In this document: one piece after another, positions 6,688 to 42,720 of the stretch
How positions within the stretch are numbered: the stretch's first letter is position 1
How the letters are laid out: the number at the start of each line of letters is the position of its first letter
Assembly (NCBI RefSeq): GCF_006345805.1
Contig: NC_043001.1
Location: 128,154,001 to 128,218,000, forward strand
DNA: 64,000 nucleotides
Direction of reading: 5' to 3'
From: Octopus sinensis
Taxonomy: Eukaryota
Program-made: the position numbers and the translations under genes
Notes under the pieces: model-generated
What the model was told of the DNA's origin: nothing
The model's database searches: none
The model's input: the letters and a program-made list of their open reading frames with translations, nothing else

Positions 6688-6730
<43 letters not shown>

Positions 6731-6734
<4 letters not shown>

Positions 6735-7056
6735 AATTGAGATAGGGGTTGCAAATTCAACCCTCCATGGGATAACATATATCCAATATACTGCTAGTGA
6801 AGTACCAACAAAGTTAATACATAAATGTTAAGAATTGCGATGCAATTAATTCATTTACTGTATTACATGGGCAAAGGTAAAATTATTTTTACCATAAATT
6901 AATAATACAAAATAAGAAAATGGAGAAATACATCTAAATCATTTATCAACTACCAGATAATACCCAATCACATACTTTATTAAACCAAGTATGTGATTGG
7001 GTATTATCTGGTAGTTGATAAATGATTTCGATGTATTTCTCCATTTTCTTATTTTG

Positions 7057-7114
<58 letters not shown>

Positions 7115-7442
7115 CAAATTGAGATAGGGATTGCAAATTCAACCCTCCATGGGATAACATATATCCAATATACTGCTAGTGAAGTACCCAACAAAGTTAA
7201 TACATAAATGTTAAGAATTGCGATGCAATTAATTCATTTACTGTATTACATGGGCAAAGGTAAAATTATTTTTACCATAAATTAATAATACAAAATAAGA
7301 AAATGGAGAAATACATCTAAATCATTTATCAACTACCAGATAATACCCAATCACATACTTTATTAAACCAAGTATGTGATTGGGTATTATCTGGTAGTTG
7401 ATAAATGATTTCGATGTATTTCTCCATTTTCTTATTTTGTAT
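6731..7442. repeat. Near-identical tandem duplication (~330-bp unit, two copies separated by (TA)n), each with a ~73-bp hairpin
   Basis: Copies start TACAAATTGAGATAGGG at 6731 and 7113. Hairpins at 6905-7059 and about 7287-7442 have a 9-nt loop. Confidence 0.9.
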
Positions 7443-7444
7443 AT

Positions 7445-7493
<49 letters not shown>

Positions 7494-7619
7494 TATATAA
7501 AGGCAGTCAAAGACCATTAATTTCTATTTTCTACAAATAAGACTCCACATACGACATATCCCTGTAATTCACATATGCAAAACAGAAGGAAGAAATAACG
7601 GAAACAAAGTCTAACAGTT

Positions 7620-10321: not shown

Positions 10322-10595
10322 TGTATAGAAATTAAATATAAAATATAAATTACAAAGTGGGACAAGAACGCAAAAACACACAAAGAGACGATACAAAAAA
10401 AACAGACGGGTCACTCGAAGCCTCTAATCTTCAGTCGGAACCGGATCATCTTAGCAATTTCGGCTGAGATCATCCGGTTCCGACTGAAGATTAGAGGCTT
10501 CGAGTGACCCGTCTGTTTTTTTTGTATCGTCTCTTTGTGTGTTTTTGCGTTCTTGTCCCACTTTGTAATTTATATTTTATATTTAATTTTATACA
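10322..10595. repeat. Near-perfect ~134-bp-stem palindrome (7-nt loop at 10456-10462)
   Basis: Arms are directly complementary; produces the twin ORFs 10160-10414(-) and 10504-10728(+). Confidence 0.92.
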
Positions 10596-10798: not shown

Positions 10799-11056
10799 TC
10801 AGTCTGGCACTTGACACTTGTCTTTACATTCTGCATTATTTTCGGCATCTACAATATTATACTGCCCTTCTTCAGGAATATAAATACTATTTGTATTCTC
10901 TGATGCCAAATTATTGCCAGTGTTAAGGCCATTTTTCTTCCCTGGGTCATCTTTCTGGAAAACTGAGAGAATTCTTTGGTATCTTACTTCCGTAGAATCC
11001 CTTTCTTTTGGAAAGTCAGGTAGGGGCCGCCTTAGCATATCAATGGAACATTTTCT
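10799..11056 (-). CDS. Host membrane-protein gene, terminal coding exon (cytoplasmic tail RKCSIDMLRRPLPDFP...CQVPD*)
   Basis: Long polypyrimidine acceptor ttttcttctttctttcccttttatttacag|; phase 0 matches the upstream donor; open to TGA at 10801-10799; non-repetitive sequence. Confidence 0.8.
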   Translation of the reverse strand, partial: RKCSIDMLRRPLPDFPKERDSTEVRYQRILSVFQKDDPGKKNGLNTGNNLASENTNSIYIPEEGQYNIVDAENNAECKDKCQVPD

Positions 11057-11266
11057 CTGTAAATAAAAGGGAAAGAAAGAAGAAAACATCAAAATTTAAT
11101 CATGGTAGAGTCAGTGTTGGTATTAAAAACATACATAGACAGTTGTATTCACTTCATTTGTTTAGTGTTTTACATGTTTCAGTTATTGGACTGCAGCCAT
11201 GCTGGAGCTATTGTCTTGAAGAAGTTTTTAATCTATCAAATCAACCCCAGAACTTATTCTTGTATT

Positions 11267-11560
11267 CAGTGGCGGACTGGGTCTAAAAACATTGGTTGCC
11301 AGGAGACTAAGGGGACCCACCTGCAACAACAATGCTATCATTTAATTTAATTTTTTTTGTTAAAAGTATTCTTTTCAACTGTCTACAAACACAGCCAGGC
11401 TGAAATAATTAATGCATTCTTCCAGGAGTGAATAAAAAAATTCTCAAACTTGAGGGAATGGGCCCCTTAGATACTAACATGGCCCCCTATATATGGATTC
11501 TAATGGTGCAGGGGCCCACTTGCCATTGGGCCAGCTGGCAACCTGGCTAGTCTGCCACTG
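11267..11560. mobile_element. hAT-type MITE with 8-bp TSD CTTGTATT
   Basis: TIRs CAGTGGCGGACTGG / CTAGTCTGCCACTG; identical 8-mers at 11259-11266 and 11561-11568. Confidence 0.88.
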
Positions 11561-11791
11561 CTTGTATTCATTCTGTGGGTGTCTCATTTGCTGAACTACT
11601 AAGTTAAGAGGATATAAACAAACCTAAATCAGTTGTCAACTGGAGAGAGAGACAAACGTATATATCTGTACATATGCAAACACACACGCACACATGCACA
11701 CACACATATACACATACAGATATATATATATAGATATATATAAGTTCAGCAAAACAATTTAGATTCAAATGAATATGGTACAAATGAATAT

Positions 11792-11860
<69 letters not shown>

Positions 11861-11974
11861 CCAAAGAATCCATTACTAATCACAGCTAAAATCACAGCTA
11901 TAATCCATAACATGCCAACTTCAAATCATACAACACCTCACTACTTTAACCCATTCATATTCTCCCTTCTCTGT

Positions 11975-12192
11975 TTTTTTCTTCTTCTTCCTCTTCTTCT
12001 TCATCATCATCATCATCATCATCGTCATCATAATCATCACCACCATCACCATCATCGTCATCTTCTCCTTCTCCTTCTTCTTCTTCTTCTTCTTCATCAT
12101 CATCATCATCAACATCGTCATCTTCTTCTTCTTCTTCTTCTTCTTCTTCTTCTTCTTCTTCTTCTTCTTCTTCTTCTTCTTCTTCTTCTTCT
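11975..12192. repeat. Compound (CTT)n/(CAT)n microsatellite
   Basis: Directly visible; explains poly-H/L/K ORFs. Confidence 0.95.
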
Positions 12193-12963
12193 ACTTCCCT
12201 ACCTTCTACCCCTTAACTTTGTCACTAATGTTTTTTAGTATAACACCTATGCAAATTCTATAAACAAGCCTTTCAATAGAAATATTCTCCTGAATTGAAC
12301 TGCAACTGCCAGCCGCCACTGACCATTCAAAATACGACCATCAGGGCACTCCCAGATTCTCCCACCCCCTTTCCTCATCAGCCTCCTTCCTCTACTACCC
12401 TACCAAGAACTCACAACGACCTCCAACACACAAGTGCAAACAAGGGAGTCAGAGAAAGGCAGAATGCCACCTATATCTGAACACTACTATAGAAATATTC
12501 CTTTAAAAAAACTTTTCTTCTAATTTTTCTAAATTTAATTATTTAATCGTTACAGTTGAAAAGGTCTCAAAATGACCGAAACCGGTACTGAAATGTTCAC
12601 TATAAAATTATTTTAGCATTTTCTATTTTTGACTTGTTTTTTCACATATATATATATATATATATATATGGTTATCCGTAATAATGAAGGGTGAAATTAA
12701 TTAATTTGGAATAATTATCAATTACACCAAGTAGTCTTCGGCATGTAAAAGCCTCATTCGAGGAAAATTTAAGTAATACTAAGCAATAAAGGGTTTAGCA
12801 ACGAATTGCCTTACCACATACCGAATTTAGAAATAGCAGTCAAAGAGTTATAGCTATTTCTTCTACTAAAAGGGAGATCTCAGTAAAAACAGCAATTGGA
12901 AGGCAGACACAAACAGGTAAGAGAGAATGAATTGACGGCAATCTATCATACAATTTTAAGTTA

Positions 12964-13061
12964 TCTATGGACGTACGTTTCGAATCAAGTTTTTAGGAAA
13001 GCATAAGAATTAAATATTAATAATTCTATCTCACCAAAACTTCTTTTCTCTTCAGCGTAGA
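12964..13061 (-). ncRNA. Mirror hammerhead copy with stem I mismatch
   Basis: Same core on the minus strand but CATAGA instead of CGTAGA (C.A at the second stem I pair) and one fewer pair at the base of stem II. Confidence 0.55.
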
Positions 13062-13476
13062 ATACTATAATCATAAATGATTATATATTGAATTTTGAGA
13101 TACTAGAAGGCACCAACTCAACTCAGTATCAGAGCGAGCTAGAATCCGCAACTAGTATCACCAAATTCAATGTGTGAATGAAAATTGTGTCACCAGCCCC
13201 TTCCCACCCGCGTGTAGCCAAAACAAGATGCTGTGGTCATCTACTGAGATAAAATATGGTTATCCGTAATAATGAAGGGTGAAATTAATTAATTTGGAAT
13301 AATTATCAATTACACCAAGTAGTCTTCGGCATGTAAAAGCCTCATTCGAGGAAAATTTAAGTAATACTAAGCAATAAAGGATTTAGCAACGAATTCTAGC
13401 TCGCTCTGATACTGAGTTGAGTTGGTGCCTTCTAGTATCTCAAAATTCAATATATAATCATTTATGATTATAGTAT

Positions 13477-13576
13477 TCTACGCTGAAGAGAAAAGAAGTT
13501 TTGGTGAGATAGAATTATTTAATATTTAATTCTTATGCTTTCCTAAAAACTTGATTTCGAAACGTACGTCCGTAGA
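13477..13576 (+). ncRNA. Predicted type I hammerhead ribozyme with extended stem II
   Basis: TCTACG-CTGAAGA-[GAAA...TTTC long stem II]-GAAA-C-GTAC-GTC^-CGTAGA; 6-bp stem I, palindromic loop 3, predicted cleavage after 13570. Confidence 0.7.
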
Positions 13577-13792
13577 TAACTTAAAATTGTATGATAGATT
13601 GCCGTCAATTCATTCTCTCTTACCTGTTTGTGTCTGCCTTCCAATTGCTGTTTTTACTGAGACCCCCCCCCCCCTTTTTAGTAGAAGAAATAGCTATAAC
13701 TCTTTGACTGCTATTTCTAAATTCGGTATGTGGTAAGGCAATTCGTTGCTAAACCCTTTATTGCTTAGTATATATATATATATACATATATA

Positions 13793-13953
13793 CGACAGGC
13801 TTCTTTCAACTTCCATCTATCAAATCCACTCACAAGGCTTTGGTCAGCCCAAGGCTATAGTAGAAGACACTTGCCCAAGGTGCCACACAGTGGAACTGAA
13901 CCCAGAACCATGTTGTTGGTAAGCAAGCTACTTACCACACAGCCACTCCTGCA
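13793..13953 (-). mobile_element. SINE family A head
   Basis: Reverse complement of the 8272-8435 head. Confidence 0.8.
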
Positions 13954-14319
13954 CGTATGTGCATATGACTATGCATGTGTGTGCACGTGCAAATGCAAAA
14001 TGCACATGTGCACACACATTCATTGTTTTTGAAAATATTAACTAAAATTGCTGGTCATGTGCTAAAATTTAAAAGTGGTATTTGTTCTAGTACTTTAAGT
14101 TTTGAGTTCAAATCCCAGCAAGGTTCAATTTTAATTTTCTTCCTTTCAGGGTCAATAAAGAATCAATCAAATTTTTGAGTTGATGTCATCGACTAACCCT
14201 TCCCATTTAAGCAGCAGGCCTTTTGCCTAAATCAGAAGCCATTATTAATATTATTATTCATCTGTCTAGTTGTGCTATACTAAACCAAATATTGTGAAAG
14301 GCAAAAGTAAATGACATAC

Positions 14320-14416
14320 CGGAAAATCAATTTTAATTTCTTCATATTGAACTGGTTCAGCTAATGCAATATTTTTGTCAGGATTTTCAGGTCTAGGAAC
14401 ACCACTAGAATTTGAC
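14320..14416 (-). CDS. Host membrane-protein gene, internal exon (SNSSGVPRPENPDKNIALAEPVQYEEIKIDFP)
   Basis: Acceptor tttatctgttccag|, donor CCG|gtatgt; 97 nt, phase 2 to 0, exactly bridging the TM exon and the terminal exon. Confidence 0.82.
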
Positions 14417-14599
14417 CTGGAACAGATAAAATATATAAATAGAAGCACACTATACTCATGTATATATATGAATGTATATATGAGACAAATCACAAATCCC
14501 TTAGGGTAGATGGCCCTGCTCGATCTGTAGAAAAGGCGTAGGTAGAAACTCCGTAAGATGTACCTGGTGTAAGCTATGGACATATAAGAGGTGTAGCAA

Positions 14600-15640
14600 T
14601 ATCAAAAGAAGGTTAACTGGGAAGGTATTTTTTTGTGTGTGGCAGATGTACAGAAAACAGATTCCATCACATGCCAGGGGAAAAAACTAGAAATAGTTGA
14701 TAGCTCCCATTACCTAAGTGGCCAAGTCAGTAGCAGTGAATGGATGCTCTAAGAGCGTAGCTGCTAGAATAAGAATAGCCGGGGCAAAGTTCAGAGAGTT
14801 CCTTTCTCTGCTGGTAACAAAGGGCCTCCCACTCAGAGTGAAAAGTAGTCTGTATGATGCTTGTGTGCAAACAGCCATGCTACGAGGCACTGAAACATGG
14901 GCTGTGACTGCTGAGGACATGTGTAGGCTTGAAAGAAATGAAGCTAGTATGCTCCACTGGATGTGTAATGTCAGTGTGCATACATGAGGGAGTGTAAGCA
15001 CCCTGAGAGAAAAGTCGGACATAAGCAGCATTAGACGTGGTGTGCAAGAGAGACAATTGCGCTGGTATGGTCATGTATTGCGTATGGATGTGGACACCTG
15101 TGTGAAGAAGTGTCACACCCTAACAGTGGAGGTAACCTGTGGAAGAAGTAGACTCAGGAAGACATGGGATGAGGTGGTGAAGTACTACCTTTGAACGTTG
15201 GGCCTCACAGGGGTAATAACAAGCAACTGAGACCTTTGGAGATATGCTGTGCTTGAGAAGACCTGGTAAGCCAAGTGAAACCATAGCTGTGGCCAATGTC
15301 AGTGTTGCATAACTGGCCCGTTTAAAAATACACATTCAATTGTCAGGCAATATGCTGTGGGAGACCTGTTGAGCCAAGTGAAATTGTTGTTGTGGCTGAT
15401 ACCAGTGCCGCCTGACTGGCACCACTTTTTGTGGCATGTAAAAAGTACAACTTGAGCGTGGCTGATGCCAGTGTTGCCTGACTGGCTCCCATGCCCGTGA
15501 CACATAAAAATACCTTTCGAGCATGGTCAACACCAGTGCCATCTGACTGGCTCCTGTGCTGGAGGCATATAAAAAGCACCATTTAAGCATGACTGATGCT
15601 AGTGCTGCCTGACTGGCATATAAAAAGCACCATTTGAGTG
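14600..15640 (+). mobile_element. 5'-truncated, decayed RTE LINE (same family as 19148-23145) with 3'-UTR modules
   Basis: ORF 14718-14987 (SVAARIRIAGAKFREFLSLLVTKGLPLRVK..LYDACV.TAML.GTETWAVTAEDM) is homologous to ORF 19962-20855. Confidence 0.85.
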
Positions 15641-15786
15641 TGCTCGATGTGACAGTCCCGTAAGGGAATTACACCACCGCTGTTTAGCCCTAGGAAGCAT
15701 CGACGCCTACTGTTGGCTTTGACATATTTTCTGTGTCCTTATATTTGCGAAGGGCTGGCAAGCACCCCCACTAGCTAGGATTAGCA

Positions 15787-15833
15787 CCTGAAGACATGCA
15801 TGTTTCTGGGTCTTGACCCGTCATCAGCCCCGG
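15787..15833 (-). ncRNA. Mirror hammerhead copy with mismatches
   Basis: Minus strand: CCGGGG-CTGATGA-CGGGT-CAAG-ACCCA-GAAACATGCATGTC-TTCAGG; C.A at the base of stem II and G.A in stem I. Confidence 0.6.
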
Positions 15834-16100
15834 ATAGTGAGACCTGCTGGTTGAGATGCCTGTCTAGCCTTCGCAAATATATATATTTACAGTGAAATCT
15901 ATTCACTGGTCACCGTAATTATGGGACTGCCACGTTATGTTGACAGTATACAACCACTCTATCGCTCCACCACCGCTCATGTCTCCTTGAGACATTTAGA
16001 AATTTAATATTCTAATTACGGTGATCAGTGAATAGATTTCACTGTAAATATATATATTTGCGAAGGCTAGACAGGCATCTCAACCAGCAGGTCCCACTAT

Positions 16101-16147
16101 CCTGGGCTGATGATGGGTTAAGACCCAGAAACATGCATGTCTTCAGG
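16101..16147 (+). ncRNA. Predicted intact type I hammerhead ribozyme
   Basis: CCTGGG-CTGATGA-TGGGT-TAAG-ACCCA-GAAA-C-ATGCAT-GTC^-TTCAGG; all core nucleotides present, predicted cleavage after 16141. Confidence 0.78.
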
Positions 16148-16361
16148 TGCTAATCCTAGCTGGTGGGGGTGCTTGCCTCCCCTTCGCAAATATAAGGACA
16201 CAGGAAATGTGTCAAAGCCGACAGGAAGCGTCGATGCTTCCTAGGGCTAAACAGCGGTGGTGTAATTCCCTTACGGGACTGTCACGTTAAGTTGACAGTA
16301 TACAACCACTCGATAGCTCCACCACCGCTCATGTCTCTTTGAGACATTTAAAAATTGAATA

Positions 16362-16398
<37 letters not shown>

Positions 16399-17704
16399 TA
16401 TAAATATTTGATTGATCTGTCTAGTTGTGCCATGGATTGTGTTCTTGATCTTGATCATGTTCTGGGTTAAAACATTTCATTTTACGTTGCTCCAGTCCGC
16501 TCAGATGAAGATGAGACGAACAACAGCAGAAGGTCAACTATGTGACAGACTAGCAACCTGACTGGGGAAGAGTATTGTATTTTTTTAGTCACTTATGTTA
16601 TATAAACTGGAATAAGTTCTGGGGTTCTGATCCAATGGACCTGAAGATTCAGGACACACTTATTTACCCTTTTTTTTTTAAAGTAGTAACACCTTTGATT
16701 TCATCAGGACTGGGATCTTGATTCTAAGATTTCTGGAACTTTGTGGAAAAGAAAATTATGCATTTATATTTGATCCAGGCCTTTGGGTTTTAATCAAACA
16801 GATTGACCCCAGGACTTAAGTTCTTTTTTTAAAAGTTTGGTACTTATTCTATCAGCCTCTTTTACTAAATCATTAAGTTAACAGGATGTAAACAAACCAA
16901 CACTAGTTGCCAAGTGAGAGACACATGGATACATGCATGCATGCACACACACACACACACACACACACAAACGCACACATTTATTCACTGGGCTTCAACA
17001 CAGTTTTTGTCTACCAAATTCATTGGTTGGTTGATTGGGGGATACAATCAAAAACATATGCTCAAGGTGCTGCATAGTGGGATTGAACTCAAAAGTACAT
17101 GGTTGCAAAGTAAACTTCTCATCTGCACAGCCATGCCTTTACTTTAAATCCATCTTTGAGATTGATACAATGACACACAAATCAAATATTGGTGGTTGCT
17201 TGAATTGACTGTTACTCTTTCCTCTCCACCAATTTCTGACCTTATGGCTATGTGAGAGATAGTTACTATTATTTTTTTCAGCAATAAGGAAGAATTGTTA
17301 ACATGATGGACAAAATGCTGCGAAGCATTTCCTTTGGCTCATTATGTTCTGAGTTCAAATTCCACTGTTGCCGACTTCACCTTTCATCCTTTCAAGATCG
17401 ATAAAATAAGCATCAACTGAGAACTCGAGTCAAATGTACTTGACTAACCTCCTCATCCTAAAAATTGTTGGACTTGTGATAAAATCTGAAAGCAAAAACA
17501 AAAAAGAAGAAAAGAAAAGAAAAGAAAAGAAATACGGGAGCAACTGTGTGTTAAAAGGTTTGTTTCCCATCCACATGGTTCTATGTTCAGTCCTACTGCA
17601 TGGCTTCTTGGGAAAGTGCCTTCTACTATAGCTTCAGGCTGACCAAAGCCTTGTGAGTGGATTTGGTAGACAGAAACTAAAAAAAACCCATCAAATATGT
17701 GTAT

Positions 17705-18072
17705 AGGCGCAGGAGTGGCTGTGTGGTAAGTAGCTTGCTAACCAACCACACGGTTGCGGGTTCAGTCCCACTGCGTGGCATCTTGGGCAAATGTCTTCTG
17801 CTATAGCCCCGGGCCGACCAATGCCTTGTGAGTGGACTTGGTAGACGGAAACTGAAAGAAGCCTGTCGTATATATGTATATATATGTATATGTGTGTGTG
17901 TTTGTGTGTCTGTGTTTGTCCCCCTAGCATTGCTTGACAACCGATGCTGGTGTGTTTACGTCCCCGTCACTTAGTGGTTCGGCAAAAAGAGACCGATAGA
18001 ATAAGTACTAAAAGGTGGTACTCCAGCATGGCCGCAGTCAGATGACTGAAACAAGTAAAAGAGTAAAAGAGA
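17705..18072 (+). mobile_element. SINE family A
   Basis: Full head-microsatellite-tail copy. Confidence 0.85.
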
Positions 18073-18637
18073 ATATATATCTACAGGGTTGGCCAAAAGT
18101 CACCCGACAGTAAATCAAAATTCCATAAATACTATCTGTAATTCTGTATTGACTTGAATGGAAAAAAGTGTTGCTCAGGAAGGATTTCAGTTTGAAGAAT
18201 TTTCATAATGCTTCATGTTTAGATTCTTTTATTGAATTCTTTCAGCTGTTAAACATAAATAAATCTTGGAATTAAATGGTTTGGAATTAAATGACTTTTG
18301 GCCAATCCTGTATATATGTGCATGTCTTTGTGTCTGTGTTGGTCCCCCACAACCGCTTGATAACTGGTGTTGCTTTGTTTCTGTCCTTGTAACTTATTGG
18401 TTCAACAAACAAGAGACTAATAGAATAAGTACCAGGTTCAAAAAAAGAAAAGTTAAATACTGGATTTGATTCTTCAACTAAAATTCTTCAAAGTGATAAC
18501 TCCAGCATGGCCACCATCTAATGACTTAAACAAGTGAAAGATAAAAGATTAGGTTCATGAGATATATGTTCAATATACAAACTAAAAAAGCAAATATAAC
18601 CGAAGGGTGTAAAATTATAAAGAAAAGAATGACTAAC

Positions 18638-18872
18638 CAATTTTTTTTGCATTTTTTTATGAATAACACCAGAGTGATACAGAGCATAAGAAGCAGTAAA
18701 ACCAAAATACTAATAAGAATAGGCATGAATAAAGTAGGAGATAGATTTCCAGCTCCACTTCCTATGTTTTCATCATTTTTCTCCACTGTTTTATTCAGAA
18801 ATCTGTCAATTTTATTTGAGTTCCATTCTGACTTGTTTTCTGGCCATATTTTCCTGCATTTTTTTTTCTTAA
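18638..18872 (-). CDS. Host membrane-protein gene, juxtamembrane + transmembrane exon
   Basis: Acceptor (T)n-gcatcag|, donor AATTG|gttagt; phase 1 to 2. Encodes KKKKCRKIWPENKSEWNSNKIDRFLNKTVEKNDENIGSGAGNLSPTLFMPILISILVLLLLMLCITLVLFIKKCKKN, a hydrophobic helix followed by a basic stop-transfer. The split codon TG|G (Trp) joins the next exon. Confidence 0.82.
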
Positions 18873-19082
18873 CTGATGCAAAAAAAAAAAAAAAAAAAAA
18901 GAATAAGAATAAAATAGTAAAATCAGAAAATATAAATGAATGAAACATACATTTGTATGTATGTATGTATGTATGTATGTATGTATGTATAAACCTAGAT
19001 ATATGTATTTGTGTGTGTATACACACACACACATACATATACATATACACACATATATATAGTGTGTGTGTATGTATGTGAG

Positions 19083-19147
<65 letters not shown>

Positions 19148-19151
<4 letters not shown>

Positions 19152-22100
19152 TCATCATCATCATCGTCGTTTAACGTCCGTTCTCCATGCTAGCATGGGT
19201 TGGACGGTTCGACCGGGGTTCTGGGAAGCCAGAAGGCTGCACCAGGCTCCAGTCTAATTTGCAATTTTCTACAGCTGGATGCCCTTCCTAACGCCAACCA
19301 CTCCGTGAGTGTAGTGGGTGCTTTTTACGTGCCACCTGCACAGGTGCCAGGCGGGGCTGGCAACGGCCACGGTCAGATTGGTGTATTTTATGTGCCACCG
19401 GCACGGAAGCCAGTCGAGGCGGTGCTGGCATCGGCACACGAGTCGGATAGTGCTTTTTACGTACCACCAGACCAGGGATCCTGGCTGGTTCAATTCGATT
19501 TCGATTTCGCTTGCCCCAACATGTCTTCACAAGCAAAGGGGGTTGGCAAGGGTGCCTGTCGTACGGTCGCATTGGAGTATTTTATGTGCCACGGCCACGA
19601 GTCGGATAGTGCTTTTTACGTACCACCAGACCAGGGATCCTGGCTGGTTCAATTCGATTTCGATTTCGCTTGCCCCAACATGTCTTCACAAGCAAAGGGG
19701 GTTGGCATGGGTGCCTGTCGTACGGTCGCATTGGAGTATTTTACGTGCCACGGCCCCGAGTCGGATAGTGCTTTTTACGTACCACCAGGCCAGGGATCCT
19801 GGCTGGTTCAATTCGGTTTCGATTTCGCTTGCCCCAACATGTCTTCGCAAGCATGGGGGGTTGGGATGGGTGTCTGTCGTCGGATGAGGTTCTATATCGA
19901 CTTCGCTTGCCTCAACCGGTCTTTGTGTCAAGGGAGGAAAGGCATTCATAATGGGCTGGGCTCACTTGTCCTGCCTGGTCTTCTCACGTACAGAATATTT
20001 CCAAAGGTCTCGGTCTCTGGTCATTTCCTCAGTGAGGCCTAAAGTTCGAAGGTCGTGCTTCACCACCTCGTCCCAGGTTTTCCTGGGTCTACCTCTTCCA
20101 CGGGTTCCCTCAACTGCTAGGGATTGGCACTTTCTCACACACCTATCTTCATCCATTCTCGCCACATGACCATACCAGCGCAATCGTCTCTCTTGCACAC
20201 CACAACTGATGCTTCTTAGGTACAACATTTCTCTCAAGGTGCTAACGCTCTGTCGAGTATGTACACTGACATTACACATCCATCGGAGCATACTGGCTTC
20301 ATTCCTCACGAGCTTACGCATGTCCTCAGCAGTCACAGCCCATGTTTTGCTGCCATGTAGCATGGCTGTTCGTACACACGCATCATACAGTCTGCCTTTT
20401 ACTCTGAGCGAGAGGCCTTTAGTCACCAGCAGAGGTAAGAGCTCCCTAAACTTTGCCCAGGCTATTCTTATTCTAGCAGTTACACTTTCAGCGCACCCAC
20501 CCCCACTACTGACTTGGTCACCTAGATAACGGAAGCTATCAACTACTTCTAGTTTTTCCCCCTGGAAAGTGACGGAAGTTGTTTTCTGCAGATTTTCGGA
20601 GGTTAATGCTCCCGAGCATCTGCCACATACAAAAACTATCTTCCCAGTTAGCCTACCTTTGACATTGCTGCACCTCTTATGTGTCCATAGCTTACACCGG
20701 GTACATCTTATAGAGTTTCTACCTACACCTTTTCTACAGATCGAGCAGGGCCATCTTCCTGAAGATATTTGTGGATTGTCTACCTTTCTACTTATTAGTA
20801 CTTTGGTTTTAGCTAGGTTGACTCTAAGGCCCCTTGATTCTAAAACTCCTTCCACACCTGGAACTTCTCCTCCAGTTCTGATAGTGACTCAGCAATAAGA
20901 GTAAGGTCGTCAGCGTAGAGGAGCTCCCAGGGACAGCCTGTCTTGAATTCCTCCGTAATTGCCTGGAGTACTATGATAAATAGGAGGGGGCTGAGTACTG
21001 AACCCTGGTGGACCCCAACCTCTACTTTGAATTCTTCTGTGTACATGTTGCCAACCCTAACCTTACTTACGGCATCTCTGTACATGGCTTGCACAGTCCT
21101 CACCAGCCATTCATCTATCCCTAGTTTCCTCATTGACCACCAGATAAGGGATCGGGGGACCCTATCAAAAGCTTTCTCCATGTCAACGAAAGCCAGGTAC
21201 AGGGGCTTATCTTTGGCTAGGTATTTCTCCTGCAGCTGCCTTACCAGGAATATAGCATCAGTGGTACTTTTTCCTGGCACGAACCCAAACTGCATCTCAT
21301 CTAAACTAACTCTCTCTCTGATTAGTTGGGCTATGACCCTCTCCGTAACCTTCATTACTTGATCCAACAGCTTGATACCTCTGTAATTATTTGTATCTAG
21401 GGCATCACCTTTACCTTTGTAGCAGTTGACTAGTATGCTGCTGCACCAGTCATTGGGTATGACTCCTTCGTGTATCACCTGGTTGACTATACGGGTGACT
21501 AGGTTATAGCCGACACTGCCAGATATTTTGAGCATCTCTGCAGTAATTCCTGATGGGCCTGGGGCTTTCCTGCTCTTCATGCTTCTAATTGCCTTAGCTA
21601 CCACGGAACTATCAACTCGGATAGCTGGTCCCTCTGTAGGGTCAACATTCGGCAGACTCTCTTTATCCCATTCATTTTCCTCATTCAGTAACCTTTCATA
21701 GTGGCGTCTCCAAGCTTCTCTCTTTGCATCCTCATTTAGCGCAAGTGAACCATCCTCCATGCGAACACATTTCTCTCCTACCACATCACGATTCTCTCTC
21801 ACACACTGTCTTGCAACACGAAATACCTCAAGTCTTTCATCCTCACGGCGCAGGACATTGGCAAATTTTCTCTTATCTGCTTCCCCTCTGGCTAGATAGA
21901 CCTGTCCCTAGCTTCCCTTCTGGCAGTCTGATACCCTTCCCTGCTACCACCGTTCTTCCAGGCCTTCCAAGCCTGTTTCTTTTGTCTAATAGCCCTGTCA
22001 ACAATATTGTTCCACCACCACGTTATTTTGGGTCTTAAGGGGACTTTGCACCAGCCACAGATCTGGTCAGCGGCTTTCAGCAGGTTGTCCCTCAGAAACG

Positions 22101-23145
22101 TCCAGTTGTCTTCTACCCCATGTGTAGCTATACCCCCTTCCACTTCGTCAAAGGCTTCAAGTAACATATCTCTAAATCTCTGTCCATTCGCAGGGGCTTT
22201 AAGCTTCCAGACCCTTCTTCTCCATGTTGGTCGTCTTCTAGTCGCCCTCTTAGTCCTGATCCTAAAGTCACTAACTACCAGTCTATGTTGTGGGGTGCAT
22301 TCTTCGCCTGGAAGGTTTTGGCATTTTTAAGCAGCCATCTTTCCCTTTTTCTGGCAAGGATGTAGTCGATTTGGCTAGTATGCCGGCCCGATCGGTAGGT
22401 GACCAGGTGGCTTGTTGGTTTCCTGAAGTTAGTGTTGCAGACCATAAGACTATTCGCATCGCAGAACTCCAGCAGCCTGGTTCCCTCCTCGTTGCGGGAA
22501 CCATAACCGTAGCCTCCATGTACGCCATGGAAGCCCCCAGCATGTCGTCCAACATGCCCATTGAAATCACCAGCCACAAAGAGAAGGTCCCTGTCGTTCG
22601 TCGATGAGGTGGTCTGCAGTAGGGTGTCATAGAAACTGTCTTTCTGTCCATCGGGTAGCCCTGGCTGAGGGGCATAGGCCGATATAATGGTTGCTAATCT
22701 ATTATGAAGCACTATTCTAATCTTAAGTATTCTGTCACTTACTCTGATTACCTCAATTACTCTATCTATCCATTTCTCAGCGATAATTATACCCACGCCA
22801 CCAACCCCGTCAGTGTTCCCTGCCCAGAAAATCTTGTACCTGTGTCCCTTGCCTGTGAGGACCCTAGCAGATCCTCCTCTCCACCTTATTTCTTGCATAC
22901 AACATACATCAACACGTCTCCGTTCAAGCATCTCGACTATCTCGCCAGACCTACTTTCAATGTGCCAACGTTGAGGGTGCCTACCCTGAGGGTGTGGGAG
23001 GTGTGGGCCTCTGAGACCCTGGGATGAGGGGCCGCAGTGTCTGTACCTGAAAAGAAAGCTTGCATTTGCCAGATATCATACTGAGACTCTAGACTACAAC
23101 CTGCATAAATTTCAAAGTTTTTGCGCTATATGATCACAATATATG
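19148..23145 (-). mobile_element. Near full-length RTE-clade LINE (APE endonuclease + RT) with about four frameshifts, modular 3' UTR and (GAT)n tail
   Basis: In-frame ATG at 23065 leads into LRVGTLNVGTL. Endonuclease motifs CCMQE, GDFNGHVG and SQIDYIL (22275-22931); RT motifs FVDMEKAFD, GVHQGSVLSP and YADD (20840-21802); C-terminus 19962-20855. Flanked by (TA)n, so no TSD is resolvable. Confidence 0.92.
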
Positions 23146-23147
23146 AT

Positions 23148-23203
<56 letters not shown>

Positions 23204-23204
23204 G

Positions 23205-24725
23205 TGCATGTGGGTGGCACGTTGTGCAGGTGGCACGTAAAAAGCACCCACTACACTCACGGAGTGGTTGGCGTTAGGAAGGGCATCCAGCTGTAGAAAC
23301 ATTGCCAAATTAGACTGGAGCCTGGTGCAGCCTTCTGGCTTCCAGAACCCCGGTCGAACCGTCCAACCCATGCTAGCATGGAGAACGGACGTTAAACGAC
23401 GATGATGATGATGATGATATGGAATTTGGAATTTGTATCTTTGTGGTACCAGTGCCGGTGGCACACAAGAGAAAACCATCCGAAAGTGGCCGTAGCCAGT
23501 ACCGCATCGACTGGCCTCCGTGCTGTGGGCACATGACAAACACCATCCGATCGTGGCCGTTCGCCAGCCTCATCTAGCACCTGTGTCGGTGGCACATAAA
23601 AAAACCATCGAAGACCCGGCAAGACTAGTCAGGCCATAACCCATGGCCCCTACCTGGGACGTAGTCAGTCCACCTGTGCATACCTTCCTTCTTGTGACAC
23701 TTGTGAAGACCTGTTGAGGCAAGTGAAAATCAAATCAAAACAAATCAAAATAGATGAACATCAATGGAATCTGTATCTTTGTGGTACCAGTGCCGGTGGC
23801 ACACACTTTGTGGTACCAGTGCCGGTGGCACACAAGAGAACCATCCGAACGTGGCCGTAGCCAGTTCCGCATCGACCGGCCTCCGTGCTGTGGGCACGTA
23901 ACAAACACCATCCGATCATGGCTGTTCGCCAGCCTCATCTGGCACTGTGTCGGTGGCACATAAAAACACCTTCCGAAGACCCGGCAAGACTAGTCAGTCC
24001 ACCTGTGCATACCTTCCTTCTTGTGACACTTGTGAAGACCGGTTGAGGCAAGTGAAAATCAAATCAAATCAAAATAGACAAAATAGATGAACATCAATGG
24101 AATTTGTATCCTGTGGTACCAGTGCCTGTGGCACACAAGAAATCCATCAGTGCCGTAGTCAGTGCGGTGGGCACATGACAAACACCATCCGATCGTGGCC
24201 GTTCGCCAGCCTCATCTAGCACCTGTGTCGGTGGCACATAAAAACACCATCCGAGCGTGGCCATCTGCCAGCCTCGTCTGGCACCTGTGTCGGTGGCACA
24301 TAAAAAACACCATCCGAGCGTGGCCGTCTGCCAGCCTCGTCTGGCACCTGTGTCGGTGGCACATAAAAACACCATCCGAGCATGCCATCTGCCAGCCTCG
24401 TCTGGCACCTGTGTCGGTGGCACATAAAAACACCATCCGAGCGTGACCGTCTGCCAGCCTCGTCTGGCACTGTGTCGGTGGCACATAAAAAACACCATCC
24501 GAGCGTGGCCGTTTGCCAGCCTCATCTGGCACCTGTGTCGGTGGCACATAAAATCACCCACTACAATCTCGGAGTGGTTGGCGTTAGGAAGGGCATCCAG
24601 CTGTAGAAACACTGCCAGATCTGACTGGACTGGTGCAGCTTTCGGGCTCCCCAGACCCCAGTTGAACCGTCCAACCCATGCTAGCATGGAAAGCGGACGT
24701 TAAATGATGATGATGATGATGATGA
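23205..24725 (+). mobile_element. Head-to-tail cluster of non-autonomous RTE-3'-end-derived elements with internal ~60-bp tandem module
   Basis: Shares GTTGGCGTTAGGAAGGGCATCCAGCTGTAG and the (GAT)n tail with the RTE 3' UTR. About 6-7 copies of AAAAACACCATCCGAGCGTGGCC..GCCAGCCTCGTCTGGCACCTGTGTCGGTGGCACAT lie at about 24175-24550. Confidence 0.8.
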
Positions 24726-24727
24726 TG

Positions 24728-24762
<35 letters not shown>

Positions 24763-25351
24763 CACTGGCGAAAATAAATTTAAGACCGATGATAAAAGTT
24801 CTATTTCTTACAAAATATTTTGTTACTAACACCATACAAATTATTTTTATCTTTTACACCTATACAGAATTTATTTCTCTTTCGAATGATGCACACACCC
24901 ACACCCACACACACACACACACACAGACACACACACACACACACAATTATGTACATGTGCATTATTTTAATTCTTGGCCTGAAGAATTACTAATTGGAGA
25001 TGTCTTACATGTTTTTCTACATTTATACCTATGGAACTCCTATTAATAATGAAACATAGGTAATGCAGAAAAATAATACCAATAAAAATTTTCCAGTTTT
25101 CTGTTTTAATATGTAATTACTCTGCAATGAGTATTTTCCAGTATTTTCAATTCTCATATCTACAAGTATACTTTGGAATATTAAAATATGTACTCCTTGA
25201 GCACAGCGTTTAGATTATAACCCTGTCTATTTATTTCTCTCACTCTCTTTTTTCTTTTATCTTTTACCTGTTTCAGACATTCGGCCGTGGCCATGCTGGG
25301 GCACTGCCTTGGAGAATTTTGGTCAGATGAATGAACCCCAATACCTGTATA

Positions 25352-25390
<39 letters not shown>

Positions 25391-25692
25391 AAGTACTGGT
25401 ACTTAGTCTATCAGTCTCTTTAGCCAAACTTCTAAGTTATGGGAACATAAGGACACCATAATCGATTGTCAAACGATGTGAGGGACAAACACAAACAAAC
25501 ACACACACACACATGATAGGCTTCTTCAGTTTCTTTGTACCAAATCCACTCGCAAGGCTTTGGTTGGCCTGAGGCTATCGTAGAAGACACTTGCCCAAGG
25601 TGCCATGCAGTGGTACTGAACCTGGGACAATGTCATTGGGAAAACAGGCTTCTTACCACATAGTCATGCCTATACATATATATAAATATATA

Positions 25693-25860
25693 GGCATAGG
25701 AGTGGCTGTGTGGTAAGTAGCTTGCTTACCAACCACATGGTTCCGGGTTCAGTCCCACTGTGTGGCACCTTGGGCAAGTCTCTTTATAGCCTCAGGCCGA
25801 CCAAAGCCTTGTGAGTGGATTTGGTAGACGGAAACTGAAAGAAGCCTGTTGTATATATGT

Positions 25861-25936
<76 letters not shown>

Positions 25937-26165
25937 GTATACATATATATATGTATGTGTGTGTGTGTGTATATGTTTGTGTGTCTGTGTTTGTCCCCCA
26001 ACATCGCTTGACAACCGATGCTGGTGTGTTTATGTCCCTGGCAAAAGAGACCGATAGAATATGTACTAGACTTGCAAAGAATAAGTCCTGGGGTCGATTT
26101 GGTCGACTAAAGGCAGTGCTCCAGCATGGCCACAGTCAAATGACTGAAACAAGTAAAAGATTAAG
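25693..26165 (+). mobile_element. SINE family A with expanded central (TA)n; a decayed opposite-strand copy lies at about 25250-25680
   Basis: Head and tail homologous to 8272-8671. Confidence 0.82.
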
Positions 26166-26376
26166 AGAATACGTATATATCCATACATATACAAATAAAC
26201 ACCTCTCATTGTACTGTTTTATCTGTGCAGACTATCTGGTTTTTCAAATTTGTTCATGAATTATTTTCCTATCAGTTTCGAAGTTGATGGAGATACTTCA
26301 CAGAAGCACTTTAACTAATTTGTAGTTGCTCTGCAACATCAGGTGGCTTACAATGGAGATTATTTTCAACAATCTA

Positions 26377-26889
26377 CCATAAATCCTTGAGTATAATCTG
26401 CCCTTGAGTATAATACGCAGGGGATTTTTAGAAGGCTGTACCTCTGAAAAACCTAAACCTTGTGTATGATACACACCACTTCTCTAACTTGAGTCAAGGA
26501 GGTCTATATAACGTCCTTGGTTTGTAAAAATGTATACGGTAATGTCCTTTATTATTATTGTATAATATAACATAATGCAAACATGTAGCTGTTTTGCACA
26601 TTTTGTTTGCAGAAAATAAAGAAATAACAGTAATAACGTTTAATAAATGTTGCTTACTGCAAGTTATGGTTGATTCTTTTATAACTTCATTGCTTTCAGG
26701 CTTAGCTTAAGGTATTTTTGTGCCTGACATCACAAAATGCGTCTGAATAAATATTGCCAGACAGCAAATAGAGACTTGGACATTGCTTAGGAAATATTTT
26801 TCATTTTTAATCTCGTATATAGTACACACTAGGGATTTTGACCTTTAAATTTTGGGGAAAAAATGCGGATTACACTCGAGGATTTATGG
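26377..26889. mobile_element. Tc1/mariner-superfamily (pogo/Tigger-like) MITE with TA TSD
   Basis: TA|CCATAAATCCTTGAGTATAATCTGC ... GCGGATTACACTCGAGGATTTATGG|TA; 25-bp TIR with 22 matches. Confidence 0.85.
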
Positions 26890-27869
26890 TACTTGACAGC
26901 TTGAAGACACCTGTCAGAGAGCCCAGGTCAATTTGAGTGGGACACTGTTGGTTCCTTTTCTTTTGCTGGTGAATTGTGCTATCACTCTTTTGACTCTAGC
27001 AAGAGGAAAGCCAAGGTTTTGTCCAATCTTACACTAGTAACATCAAAGTTCAAAGCGATCCATAACATGTCCTCTTTGAAAATTAGACAACTTTTGTTTC
27101 TGGTGTTCGCAACAAGACTAGCTGCCATAAACAATTAATATACTGTAATCTCAAGTGAAAATTAATACAAGCTTGAAGCACCAGATAGTGTCCACACACA
27201 GAAAACAATATAATGAGCAGTGTTTATTTACTTATGAGATGTCTGTTTGCCTGCCTGCCTGCCTGACTGTCTGTCTGTCTGTATGTATGTCTGTCTGTAT
27301 GTATGTATGTATGTATGTATGTATGTATGTAGAACAATCTTACTTAGAAAGGGATGCGTGCGTTCCGTCATATAATATATTAATAAATAAAACATATGCA
27401 TATACATATACATATATGTACGTACCTACCTCTACATGTATATATACACGCATATATGAGTACAGGACACAAAAAAAAAAACGTCGAACACAATGAGAAA
27501 CGAAAACATAAACACAAACCCAAGGAACTGGACATTTTTCTTAAACAACAAAAAAATAGAGTACAGGACAAATAACACAAGGAAAAAAAAAAACCCTTCT
27601 TCAGTCTGTGTGTATGTATGTATGCTGCAGCAGCAGCAGCAGACAAAGAACATCTAACAGTGATGGTGGAATTACTAAATCATGATCTTTGTGTCTTTGC
27701 ACATCTTCAGTAGCAAGTATCCACTATTAAATGCATGCTTAGAAAAATTTCACTTCCTCTGATATATAGCAAAACAGTGATTAACAAAACACTGGTGTTG
27801 CAAATTTTTGGTGGGCTGAGTAAAAAGCAGTATTAGTTCAGAATATCATTCTGTATATCTTATTTAACA

Positions 27870-27904
<35 letters not shown>

Positions 27905-27906
27905 AA

Positions 27907-28293
27907 TCTCTCTCTATATAAAGCTGAAGTTGTCTGTGTGTGGCAAGTTTGGTAGCCTTCAACTAACACTATCTCCTCCGAGACCTTGCGTCGCAAGTTG
28001 ACCAAAATTGAGAGTATGATAGAAGAAGGCTTGCTCTTCCTTCTATAGAAGAAAAAATTCAAATCAGACCATGTTAACACCAAAAATTATTTACATAAAA
28101 AAGGTGCTTGTTTTCTATGAAAATCCCTATTTTTTACGATTTTTTTGACTGCTGTGTTGCCATTTTCCGGGTGAAAATGTTCACTTAAAGAGAATAACAA
28201 GCTACATTATGCAAAATTTTTACTTTGCAAAAATTCCAATTCTAAAGGGTTGAAAAGAAAACAAACCCAAGCAACGCTGGGCTACACTGCTAG
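27907..28293 (+). mobile_element. Non-autonomous Helitron
   Basis: A|TC 5' end (TCTCTCTCTATATAAAG), 3' hairpin CCCAAGC-AAC-GCTGGG at 28266-28281, then CTAG|T. Confidence 0.8.
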
Positions 28294-28440
28294 TATATGT
28301 ATATATTTATTTATATTATTATTTAAAACAATTTGATTCAGCCCCATGCATCTTTTGAAGGTTTGTCACAGGAACCCAGCTCACCAGGCTCAGGTTTTAA
28401 ATAATAATAATATATGAAACTCCTACTTTGGGAAGATGTA

Positions 28441-28520
28441 TGGGAAGATAAATGGAGGCATAACTTCTCCATCACTAGTGATCACTCCAAAGACTCTGAT
28501 GTTGACTGGATGCTTGATTT
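28441..28520 (-). mobile_element. Tc1/mariner-type transposase remnant
   Basis: Minus strand reads IKHPVNIRVFGVITSDGEVMPPFIFP, resembling the KHP..VMVFG....G.VMPP motif of IS630-Tc1-mariner transposases. Confidence 0.5.
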
Positions 28521-29070
28521 TTATCACTCTCAGCACATGTCCTTAGGTCGCACTGTCCTCAGAGTGACACCCAAACACTCTGAAATGTTTGTATTGGAAC
28601 TTCTGACATGAATGTCAAGCAGTACAGCATGTTGTTTCCAAATTTCTGGCTAAGTGAATTATGTCATGGTGCTTTTTTTCTTACAGACAGTGCCCAACTG
28701 ACCCTACTATACTGTGTAGTTGACAAAATCAAAAACAAACAATGAAATTAAAAATATAAAATGGTGCCAGTTTACTCATTGCACCCTGTATATACATGTG
28801 TGTGTGTGTTTGTGTGTGTGTGCGTGTGTGTGTGTATTTATGTATGTATTTATAGATATTTATTTTATGTGTGTATATACCCCACCACCACATAACAGCT
28901 TCTTTGAAATTCAAATTCCTTTGATTGCTCATCCTTGTGCTGTTGATATTCTTTAATGAGCCTAGTTCTGTGTCTTGCACAATTGTTATCTATCTGAAAT
29001 CACAAACATTATTCAACGACTGATTACATCATAAGAAATAGTTAGATGAGACAGGTATTTATATACTCAC

Positions 29071-29322
29071 ATTTTTTACTGACATTGCACAATGACCAAG
29101 GGCTCTCCTTTTCACATACCTTGAGGTTCCCGACGTTCATTTCCGCAACGTAGACACATTTGACATATTTTATCATGTCGCCTTCTTTCAAAAATCCCGT
29201 TGTAACATTACATGTTCTCCTATCGGTTGTGTTATTTGAATGGCAGTGGTAATAAGCATTGCAATCACATGGATCAAAGAATGACATGTTTTCACTCTTA
29301 CAATTGTGCACACGGCAAAAAT
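29071..29322 (-). CDS. Host membrane-protein gene, extracellular Cys-rich exon; peritrophin-A / chitin-binding type 2 (CBM14)-like
   Basis: Acceptor tttttttcaaattttcag|, donor AAT|gtgagt; 252 nt, symmetric phase 1-1 and compatible with the TM exon. Contains FFDPCDCNAYYHC-x10-C-x17-C-x13-C and N-glycosylation sequons NNT/NTT, NVT, NVS. An alternative donor AAG|gtatgt lies at 29120. Confidence 0.68.
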
Positions 29323-41811: not shown

Positions 41812-42189
41812 ACACACACACACACACACACACACACACATCTTCACACACACACATGCACAATGTTCATCAGGCACTGACTGAACGTACTTACGTATGT
41901 GATACTATTAGTAGCGTATATAATGCATGTAGTATGAAGCATCTGTAGTAATATTAGACTCTCATTATATGGAATACTCTTTTTATTGATTTTTACACAA
42001 ATTAATTTCGTGTGGCTGTGTGGTAAGAAGCTTTCTTCCCAACACATGGTTCCAGATTCAGTCCCACTGTATGACACCTTGGGCAGGTGTCTTCTACCAT
42101 AGCCTTAGGCCAACCAAAGCCTTGTGAGTGGATTTGGTAGATGGAAACTGAAAGCCCATTGTATATATATATGTGTGTGTGTGTGTATG

Positions 42190-42720
42190 ATTTTCTAACT
42201 AGAAAGGGTATGGCCTGGTCAGCCTGTAATGACATGCATAAGATCTGGTCATCAAATCTATGTAGAGACTTCAAACTTGAAATCTTCAAATCCACAGTCG
42301 AACCAATTCTTCTATATGGCTCAGAAACCTATACATTATCAAAGAAGCTTGAGAGGCGGTTGGATGGAACCTACACTCGCCTCCTTATGAGAGCTCAAAA
42401 TCTCTTGTGGAAGCGTCATTCAATCAAAATGCAAATATATGGGAAACTACCATCTGTGTCATCTCTTGTGAATGGTAGGAGAGTCCAGTTTGCTGGACAT
42501 TGTTGTAGAGCTGAAAACGTGGCAATTTCTACTCTTCTCCTCTGGAAGCCATCTACTCGCAATACCAGAGGGTGCACACTCTCCTACCCTGATGTAATCT
42601 CCAGGGATACAGGCATCCAGCAACAGGACCTCCGTAATGCTATGATAGACCGTGAAGTCTGGCGTAGCATGGTAAATTCCATTGTCTCAACCACGGTCAA
42701 ACAATGATGATGATGATGAT
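42190..42720 (+). mobile_element. 5'-truncated RTE-type LINE 3' end (third family) with (GAT)n tail
   Basis: ORF 42141-42707: KGMAWSAC..M.KIWSS..F..TVEPILLYGSETYTL...LE.RLDGTYTRLL..RR..FAGHC.R, the RTE thumb/C-terminus. Confidence 0.85.

Follow-up and report, generated by a model that had tools for sequence, protein, structure and literature searches.

The window analysed here is a 64,000-nucleotide stretch of Octopus sinensis DNA (assembly GCF_006345805.1, contig NC_043001.1, forward-strand positions 128,154,001 to 128,218,000), and all positions below are counted from its first letter. Its minus strand carries LOC115212034, a gene listed in RefSeq as an "uncharacterized protein", whose five coding exons lie between positions 10799 and 55926 and encode 293 amino acids. 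The predicted product joins a Cys-rich N-terminal part related to the CBM14 (peritrophin-A) family, a single transmembrane (TM) segment and a tail of 123-124 aa that carries conserved tyrosine and proline motifs; judged from the sequence, this gene identity and protein architecture are near certain. An initial annotation of the region, made from the DNA letters, had described four of the exons together with their splice sites, phases and coordinates, and had read them as a Cys-rich N-terminal region followed by a single TM segment and by a tail of roughly 120 residues. We confirmed both the exons and the layout, as the 279-aa product of the four spliced exons matched residues 15-293 of LOC115212034 with 100% identity over 100% of its length. 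The coding sequence of the public record spans 45,128 bp on CM016863.1, which corresponds exactly to positions 10799-55926 of the window. The earlier statement that no gene name could be recognised still holds for a functional name, but the locus had already been annotated as an uncharacterized gene.

The N-terminal exons that had not been located at first turned out to be one missing coding exon, which was placed by tblastn, reading of the sequence and translation (Table 1); it lies upstream of the Cys-rich exon 2, from which 26.5 kb separate it. No earlier in-frame ATG was present in the contiguous genomic sequence back to the nearest upstream stop, 28 codons away from the exon 1 ATG, and an alternative, unannotated 5' exon is possible. 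The phases of exons 2 to 5 chain as 1-1, 1-2, 2-0 and stop, and a single open frame results after joining. A nearer exon 2 donor (GTATGT at 29119) was rejected because it breaks the frame into exon 3, so that the exons can be chained only through the GTGAGT donor at 29070, which is also the one used by the public gene model. Exon boundaries fall at the same residues in the orthologues of O. bimaculoides and Argonauta hians, and the five-exon structure is common to all three species; because these orthologues keep the boundaries as well as the motifs described below, the exon chain and the motifs are unlikely to have arisen by chance. The gene measures 45 kb in O. sinensis, 50.6 kb in O. bimaculoides and 9.1 kb in Argonauta, a difference that is intronic and that in O. 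sinensis includes a 7.5-kb satellite and a long interspersed nuclear element (LINE). A tblastn search with all family proteins found no paralogous exons and no second gene of the family in the window outside the five exons.

Table 1 Coordinates of the coding exons, protein features and repeats in the window (ORF, open reading frame; TRF, Tandem Repeats Finder; LTR, long terminal repeat).
Feature	Positions	Strand	Details
Coding exon 1	55885-55926	minus	ATG; MNSLNFPITKIHP (13 residues) and first base of D14; donor GTGAGT
Coding exon 2	29071-29322	minus	252 nt; residues 14-98; Cys-rich module; acceptor ttttcag, donor GTGAGT
Coding exon 3	18638-18872	minus	235 nt; basic KKKKCRKIWPE with C103, helical juxtamembrane segment, TM helix, KKCKK; donor GTTAGT
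Coding exon 4	14320-14416	minus	97 nt; membrane-proximal tail with VQYEEI; donor GTATGT
Coding exon 5	10799-11056	minus	258 nt including stop TGA (10799-10801); RKCSIDMLRRPLPDFP, VRYQRILSV, SIYIPEEGQYNIV (10850-10882)
Divergent CBM14 core	29114-29302	minus	C21-C83
TM segment	18658-18732	minus	LFMPILISILVLLLLMLCITLVLFI; residues 145-169
Stop-transfer KKCKK	18643-18657	minus	four Lys, directly after TM
YEEI	14335-14346	minus	residues 200-203; checked by translation
RPLPDFP	11009-11029	minus	residues 218-224; starts 14 residues past I203
YQRI	10970-10981	minus	
YIPE	10871-10882	minus	
YNIV	10850-10861	minus	
Intron 1 satellite	29341-36903		7.5 kb; 22-bp unit, about 350 copies, 89% matches (TRF)
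Broken non-LTR retrotransposon, intron 2	19962-22931	minus	same orientation as host gene; three ORFs: Exo_endo_phos, RVT_1 and a C-terminal one with weak PHD-like zinc finger
Better-preserved LINE upstream of exon 1	59575-62804	minus	896-aa ORF with RVT_1 (108.9 bits), preceded by a 167-aa ORF with endonuclease fragment
Related minisatellites	15393-15617, 19432-19880, 24165-24558, 46717-46877	both	units of 62-66 bp and 159 bp; contain GGCACATAAAAA.ACCATCCGAGCG.GGCC

By its sequence, LOC115212034 falls into a small mollusc family of octopods and bivalves that had not been described before and whose members carry one to three Cys-rich modules each. A profile built from the three orthologues (O. 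sinensis; O. bimaculoides LOC106871247, 75% identity; Argonauta hians, 42% identity) was searched against 1.84 billion representative proteins, and only 10 proteins were retrieved at E<=0.001. Among the matches were an octopod paralogue (O. vulgaris CAI9722888 and O. bimaculoides LOC106874494) and three bivalve relatives from Solemya velum, Pinctada imbricata and Potamilus streckersoni, the last two of which are labelled "Chitin-binding type-2 domain-containing protein" in UniProt. The bivalve proteins share the full layout of module, TM segment and tyrosine-motif tail, with one module in Pinctada and Potamilus and three in tandem in Solemya. Two canonical multi-CBM14 mucin-like proteins matched the profile over the Cys-rich part only (E 6.5e-11). 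Further protein searches with the family alignment and with the Pinctada protein alone added no members, and when PDB sequences were searched with the orthologue profile, the only matches were spurious low-complexity ones to the designed "Pizza" propellers (E >=0.05). A literature search on the LOC identifiers and on CBM14/peritrophin transmembrane receptors found nothing relevant, and one on YEEI combined with RPLP found nothing. The combination of a CBM14 module, a TM segment and a tail with SH2 and SH3 motifs, all without a signal peptide, matches no described family, although the gene itself had been catalogued as uncharacterised.

The tail is predicted to be disordered (pLDDT, the predicted local distance difference test score, <35 over residues 178-293 in the AlphaFold model), and within one predicted-disordered segment it holds a YEEI-type SH2 motif and a class I R-x-x-P-x-x-P SH3 motif. 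The phosphorylated form pYEEI is the optimal ligand of Src-family SH2 domains, and RxxPxxP is the consensus of class I SH3 ligands. Conservation in the tail is confined to four islands, YEE[IV], RKCSIDML[RK]RPLPDxP, YQRIL and SIYIP.EGQYN. Identity to Argonauta reached 100% in YEEIK, 88% in RKCSIDMLRRPLPDFP, 79% in RDS..V.YQRILSV and 73% in TNSIYIPEEGQYNIV, compared to 11-25% in the spacers between the islands. Read from the alignment, such a pattern is characteristic of short linear motifs that are functional. Across the eight family sequences, Y200 (YxxI) and Y267 (in the C-terminal S.Y) are invariant (8/8). The YEEI and RPLP motifs had been pointed out initially, with loss in orthologues named as what would speak against them; instead, YEE[IV] and RPLPDxP were retained in all three octopod orthologues (YEEV/RPLPDFP in O. 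bimaculoides, YEEI/RPLPDCP in Argonauta), YEEI was kept in the octopod paralogue, and conservation was partial beyond. The bivalve counterparts are YSSI and RPLPDRP in the same place in Pinctada, YQQI and PSLPARP in Potamilus, and YNTI with no proline motif in Solemya. Bivalve tails also have a membrane-proximal NPxY (NPQY/NPEY) and a DPTYN block, both of which are lacking in octopods (ENPDKN). An immunoreceptor tyrosine-based activation motif (ITAM; YxxL/I-x6-12-YxxL/I) was considered and rejected, as YIPE has E at +3 and YEEI and YQRI lie 30 residues apart. Sub-threshold Pfam matches over the TM segment and tail (TRAP_alpha, ODV-E18, TMEM51, Cadherin_C_2 and others) were rejected as compositional. 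A separate observation concerns an insect protein, XP_055301670 of Sitodiplosis mosellana, which consists of repeated units of a leucine-rich repeat ectodomain, a TM segment and a tail, and which matched the family profile only over the TM segment and YEEI (E 2.7e-4). Its tails carry N.YEEI about 30-40 residues past each TM segment, and invertebrate receptors may here have a YEEI signalling motif close to the membrane that occurs independently of the mollusc one.

The only hydrophobic segment of the protein was assigned as the TM segment, and the full-length AlphaFold 2 (AF2) model places helices over residues 146-177. The 15 residues before it are acidic or neutral (NDENIGSGAGNLSPT), the basic KKCKK follows it, and all ten invariant cysteines as well as seven of the nine N-x-S/T sequons lie N-terminal of it. 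None of the eight family proteins showed a signal-peptide core, the maximum 8-residue hydropathy at the N-terminus being 0.1-1.3, and 2.0 in Solemya. The most straightforward interpretation is a predicted type III topology (N-out, C-in) with the TM segment acting as a reverse signal-anchor, and because there is no signal peptide, exposure of the Cys-rich module to the outside depends on the TM segment having this role. The opposite type II topology, with the Cys-rich part in the cytosol, was rejected, as the invariant cysteines and most sequons precede the TM segment and KKCKK follows it. Of the receptor with an ectodomain that had been proposed at the outset, the single TM segment and the Cys-rich N-terminal part therefore stand, but no signal peptide is present and exposure rests on the predicted type III insertion. 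A disulphide-rich domain of 140 residues that apparently reaches the outside with no signal peptide would be a cell-biological oddity in its own right.

The Cys-rich part consists of a divergent CBM14 core followed by a conserved PW..C extension. The core cysteines are C21, C34, C40, C51, C69 and C83, separated by 12, 5, 10, 17 and 13 residues, and the CBM14 register of six cysteines, a C-x5-C and an aromatic pair between the second and third cysteine is present (DPCDCNAYYHC). With the CBM_14 model (PF01607), the O. sinensis protein scored 17.5 bits (E 0.0047), under the gathering threshold of 22.1 bits, O. bimaculoides scored 13.7 bits and Argonauta gave no Pfam match, while the three bivalve homologues exceeded the cut-off with 57.3, 23.0 and 29.9 bits. 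When the ectodomain alignment of the family was compared by hhalign to nine canonical CBM14 repeats, a probability of 96.9% was obtained (E 1.7e-10 over 45 columns), and C21, C34, C40, C51 and C69 were paired with the first five CBM14 cysteines. The peritrophin-A/CBM14 relation suggested in the initial annotation was thereby supported, and because the bivalve relatives pass Pfam and the profile-profile comparison is strong, we class the Cys-rich exon, despite the sub-threshold octopus score, as a divergent CBM14-related module and not as a certified Pfam member. An AF2 model of residues 12-131 (pLDDT 79.2, predicted template modelling score 0.70) has a small beta-hairpin core as expected for CBM14. 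Its top Foldseek match was Der p 23 (4zce; TM score 0.56 on the target, non-significant at E 0.27), and with the lower-confidence full-length model, CHIT1 (5hbf) and Aplysia EHEP (8in6) appeared near the top of the list, the structural E-values of 0.27-1.6 being non-significant. In the orthologue alignment ten cysteines are invariant, compared to six in the CBM14 core. The core is followed by PW..C, by C103 (CR.IWPE in octopods) and by two helices, and no relative of this extension could be detected. Y37 and the DPC.C..Y..C core are invariant, whereas Y38 and F57 are not, and a conserved sequon, CN[VI]TT, lies within the hairpin by which canonical CBM14 domains touch chitin.

The rate of evolution was estimated by the Nei-Gojobori method between O. 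sinensis and O. bimaculoides (dS, the synonymous divergence, ~0.13). The ratio of nonsynonymous to synonymous divergence (dN/dS) was 1.03 over the whole gene, with 1.55 in the ectodomain and 0.52 in the tail, and none of the three values differed significantly from 1; the difference between ectodomain and tail had a p value of 0.058 and the excess of the ectodomain over neutrality a p value of 0.30. The comparison with Argonauta gave a dN/dS of ~0.26, but here dS is saturated. Overall, the gene appears to be fast-evolving, with a tail that is nominally more constrained than the ectodomain. The use of dN/dS as proof of positive selection was rejected, since the values are non-significant.

The window is AT-rich, with many (TA)n and (CA)n microsatellites and LINE fragments. 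The satellite in intron 1 ends 19 nt upstream of the exon 2 acceptor and accounts for a low-GC, skewed stretch at 30-36 kb; on the gene strand, its unit CTGACTCAAAATTAATATGCAG has a branch-point-like CTGAC and a CAG end in each copy, and no exact copies of the unit were found in the orthologous loci of O. bimaculoides and Argonauta. The retrotransposon in intron 2 explains part of the size of that intron. Further reverse transcriptase fragments were seen at 52260-52775 on the plus strand and probably at 42141-42707, also on the plus strand. The related minisatellites are dispersed, flank the intronic LINE and look like a satellite family or one resembling short interspersed nuclear elements. 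An inverted repeat at 10329-10589 (127 nt, 98% complementary, 7-nt spacer) begins some 210 nt past the stop codon, probably within the 3' untranslated region; it was absent downstream of the O. bimaculoides and Argonauta orthologues, and if transcribed, it would form a long double-stranded RNA hairpin of the kind that ADAR typically edits in cephalopods. At 6690-7499, 3-4 kb downstream of the stop codon, 2.1 copies of a 383-bp unit that starts with a (TA)n tract follow each other with 98% identity, which looks like a recent local duplication. As to neighbouring genes, the O. bimaculoides orthologue (CM046605.1) lies antisense inside a Pro_isomerase (cyclophilin-type) gene that spans the whole locus, and no cyclophilin exons were found in the window or in the O. 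bimaculoides locus sequence examined. In both O. bimaculoides and Argonauta an ankyrin-repeat gene follows downstream, and in Argonauta a PICK1-like gene (PDZ and Arfaptin/BAR) lies upstream; exons of neither neighbour, the first ankyrin-repeat exon included, were detected in the window.

Because the protein has no catalytic domain and conserved tyrosines lie in a disordered tail, we tentatively favour reading it as a non-catalytic tyrosine-phosphorylated receptor whose tail would dock Src-family kinases through SH3 and SH2 domains, a possibility that we hold with somewhat less than even confidence. The Cys-rich, N-glycosylated module would face outward as a lectin-type domain and the tail would be cytosolic. 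A multivalent ligand, such as chitin, another polymer rich in N-acetylglucosamine (GlcNAc) or a glycoprotein, would cluster the ectodomains, and a Src-family kinase could dock by its SH3 domain on MLRRPLPDFP, C-terminal to Y200. Such an arrangement has a biochemical precedent, as the Km of C-Src fell about seven-fold, from 28.7 to 4.3 uM, when the tyrosine of a substrate had a class I ligand (..RRPLPPLP) on its C-terminal side (PMC4509517). The docked kinase would then phosphorylate Y200 in YEEI and probably Y234, Y267 and Y274, and pYEEI might retain the SH2 domain of the kinase or recruit other SH2 proteins, by which ligand binding would be turned into a tyrosine-kinase signal. A much stronger version of this reading can be formulated, in which the protein would be a mollusc-specific, kinase-less CBM14 transmembrane sensor of chitin or glycans, the first in animals, that lacks a signal peptide, keeps a Src-family kinase pre-docked on RPLPxxP, signals through pYEEI and has an ectodomain under diversifying selection in an immune or prey-recognition arms race; we regard this combination as unlikely.

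Several of the results weigh against the receptor reading. RPLP is missing from the octopod paralogue and from Solemya, and outside cephalopods the +1 and +2 residues of YxxI are non-acidic (YSSI, YQQI, YNTI). The profile search detected no family members in squids, gastropods or non-molluscs, and the whole-gene dN/dS of ~1.0 between two Octopus species is indistinguishable from neutrality. The missing signal peptide belongs here too, as translocation of a 143-residue disulphide-rich N-terminal domain by a reverse signal-anchor would be unusual. In addition, chitin, which the initial annotation had proposed to be sensed or adhered to, might not be the ligand, because the CBM14 core is sub-threshold, its loop between the fourth and fifth cysteine (17 residues) is longer than usual in CBM14, and the aromatic residues are only partly kept. 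Docking of Src-family kinases, which the initial annotation had put forward, keeps the presence and conservation of YEEI and RPLPDFP on its side but becomes one of several readings, as the same motifs also fit AP-2 YxxΦ signals and sites resembling an immunoreceptor tyrosine-based inhibitory motif (ITIM).

Because YQRI, YEEI and YNIV all fit the YxxΦ sorting signal and would be equally good for AP-2, a cargo receptor for endocytosis or scavenging has to be taken seriously as a rival, although we consider it rather unlikely. In such a protein the unphosphorylated tail tyrosines, together with NPxY in bivalves, would direct the internalisation of chitin fragments or another ligand, or cycling between surface and endosome. 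YQRI is close to the YQRL of TGN38, a textbook ligand of AP-2 mu2, the bivalve NPQY/NPEY corresponds to a clathrin-adaptor signal (Dab2/ARH/Numb), and the family-wide invariant is a tyrosine with a hydrophobic residue at +3 and not the acidic residues at +1 and +2. FIBCD1, one of the known membrane chitin receptors of animals, has reportedly been described as endocytic, which we count in the same direction. Sorting would, however, leave the strictly conserved RKCSIDML[RK]RPLPDxP block (88-100% identity) unexplained and has no need for the EE after Y200, which is conserved in both octopod paralogue groups, while NPxY is lost in the octopod orthologues. Cargo sorting and Src docking are not mutually exclusive and could coexist. 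The tail tyrosines would have yet another meaning if phosphorylated VQYEEI and VRYQRI acted as ITIMs that recruit a SHP/Corkscrew-type phosphatase and so damp signalling. Both sites match the pattern [SIVL]-x-Y-x-x-[IVL] in O. sinensis and O. bimaculoides, and the second persists throughout the three octopods (VYYQRI in Argonauta), with SIYNTI in Solemya; the consensus is nevertheless loose and frequent by chance, and the first motif has lost its -2 residue in Argonauta (PPYEEI) and two bivalves (ETYSSI in Pinctada, DDYQQI in Potamilus). We find an inhibitory receptor very improbable.

Other explanations concern the ectodomain. It may no longer bind chitin and may instead be a fast-evolving module for a protein or another glycan ligand (pathogen, gamete, or self/non-self), of which only the CBM14 disulphide scaffold is left. 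The sub-threshold octopus Pfam scores with no match in Argonauta, the variable Y38 and F57, the sequon in the canonical chitin-binding hairpin and the higher dN/dS of the ectodomain than of the tail are all in line with this. The dN/dS excess is non-significant, however, both against neutrality and against the tail, the bivalve relatives score as bona fide CBM_14, and Y37 and the DPC.C..Y..C core are invariant; we think that this reading is unlikely. The protein could also be a matrix anchor or adhesion protein, in which the CBM14 module ties an epithelium to a chitinous layer (sucker lining, beak, radula, gut cuticle or bivalve shell matrix) and the tail contacts cortical adaptors, with phosphorylation being secondary. 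As a rule, CBM14 proteins have a structural role in chitin matrices, both bivalves and octopods build chitinous structures, and the three tandem modules of Solemya are what would be expected for avidity towards a polymer. A fast ectodomain (even if its dN/dS excess is nominal) would be unexpected for an invariant polymer, though, and Pfam recognised no cytoskeletal-linker motif or domain in the tail. We hold an anchoring role to be quite improbable.

On present evidence, LOC115212034 is an in-silico candidate within a small, fast-evolving and lineage-restricted family. Chitin has to be sensed by the animals that produce or consume it. If the preferred reading of a Src-docking receptor is true, the direct link between a CBM14 module and docking motifs for tyrosine kinases would make it a receptor of a new design, through which innate recognition and the sensing of cuticle or prey could be approached in molluscs, whose signalling receptors are poorly known. 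CBM14 is the most common chitin-binding fold in animals, yet to our knowledge very few animal membrane chitin receptors have been reported, with FIBCD1 and LYSMD3 as the main dedicated ones and TLR2 implicated, and none of them uses CBM14. FIBCD1 and LYSMD3 bind chitin at the membrane through a fibrinogen-related domain and a LysM domain, respectively, and like the octopus protein they are small single-pass membrane proteins that present a domain for GlcNAc polymers at the cell surface (PMC13078761). The octopus protein has no Pfam match to either domain, and topology and tails are unrelated, which makes the two proteins analogues at best. The single-pass receptors CED-1, Draper and MEGF10 resemble the octopus family in lacking a kinase domain. 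Their tails have NPxY and a downstream YxxI/L, as do the bivalve relatives, but the octopus ectodomain shows no EMI or EGF domain in Pfam, octopods lack the NPxY tyrosine and ITAM spacing is absent, so the likeness is limited to the motifs of the tail. The bipartite Src docking sites of Cas and Sin (Efs) likewise place a class I RxxPxxP near a Src-SH2-type tyrosine in a disordered region of a protein with no kinase domain. Cas and Sin are cytosolic scaffolds and not membrane receptors, however, their proline motif precedes the tyrosine, in reverse order to the octopus tail, and the resemblance is at the level of motifs with no sequence homology. For the module, the likeness is to the peritrophin-A/CBM14 group (insect peritrophins, the C-terminal domain of human chitotriosidase, the mite allergen Der p 23 and Aplysia EHEP), with which it shares the core Cys register and the DP.DC..YY.C signature, although the octopus module adds four conserved cysteines and a PW..C plus helical extension that has no known counterpart. 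In contrast to the known CBM14 proteins, which are secreted, the octopus family has no signal peptide and combines this module with membrane anchoring and a motif-rich, predicted cytoplasmic tail.

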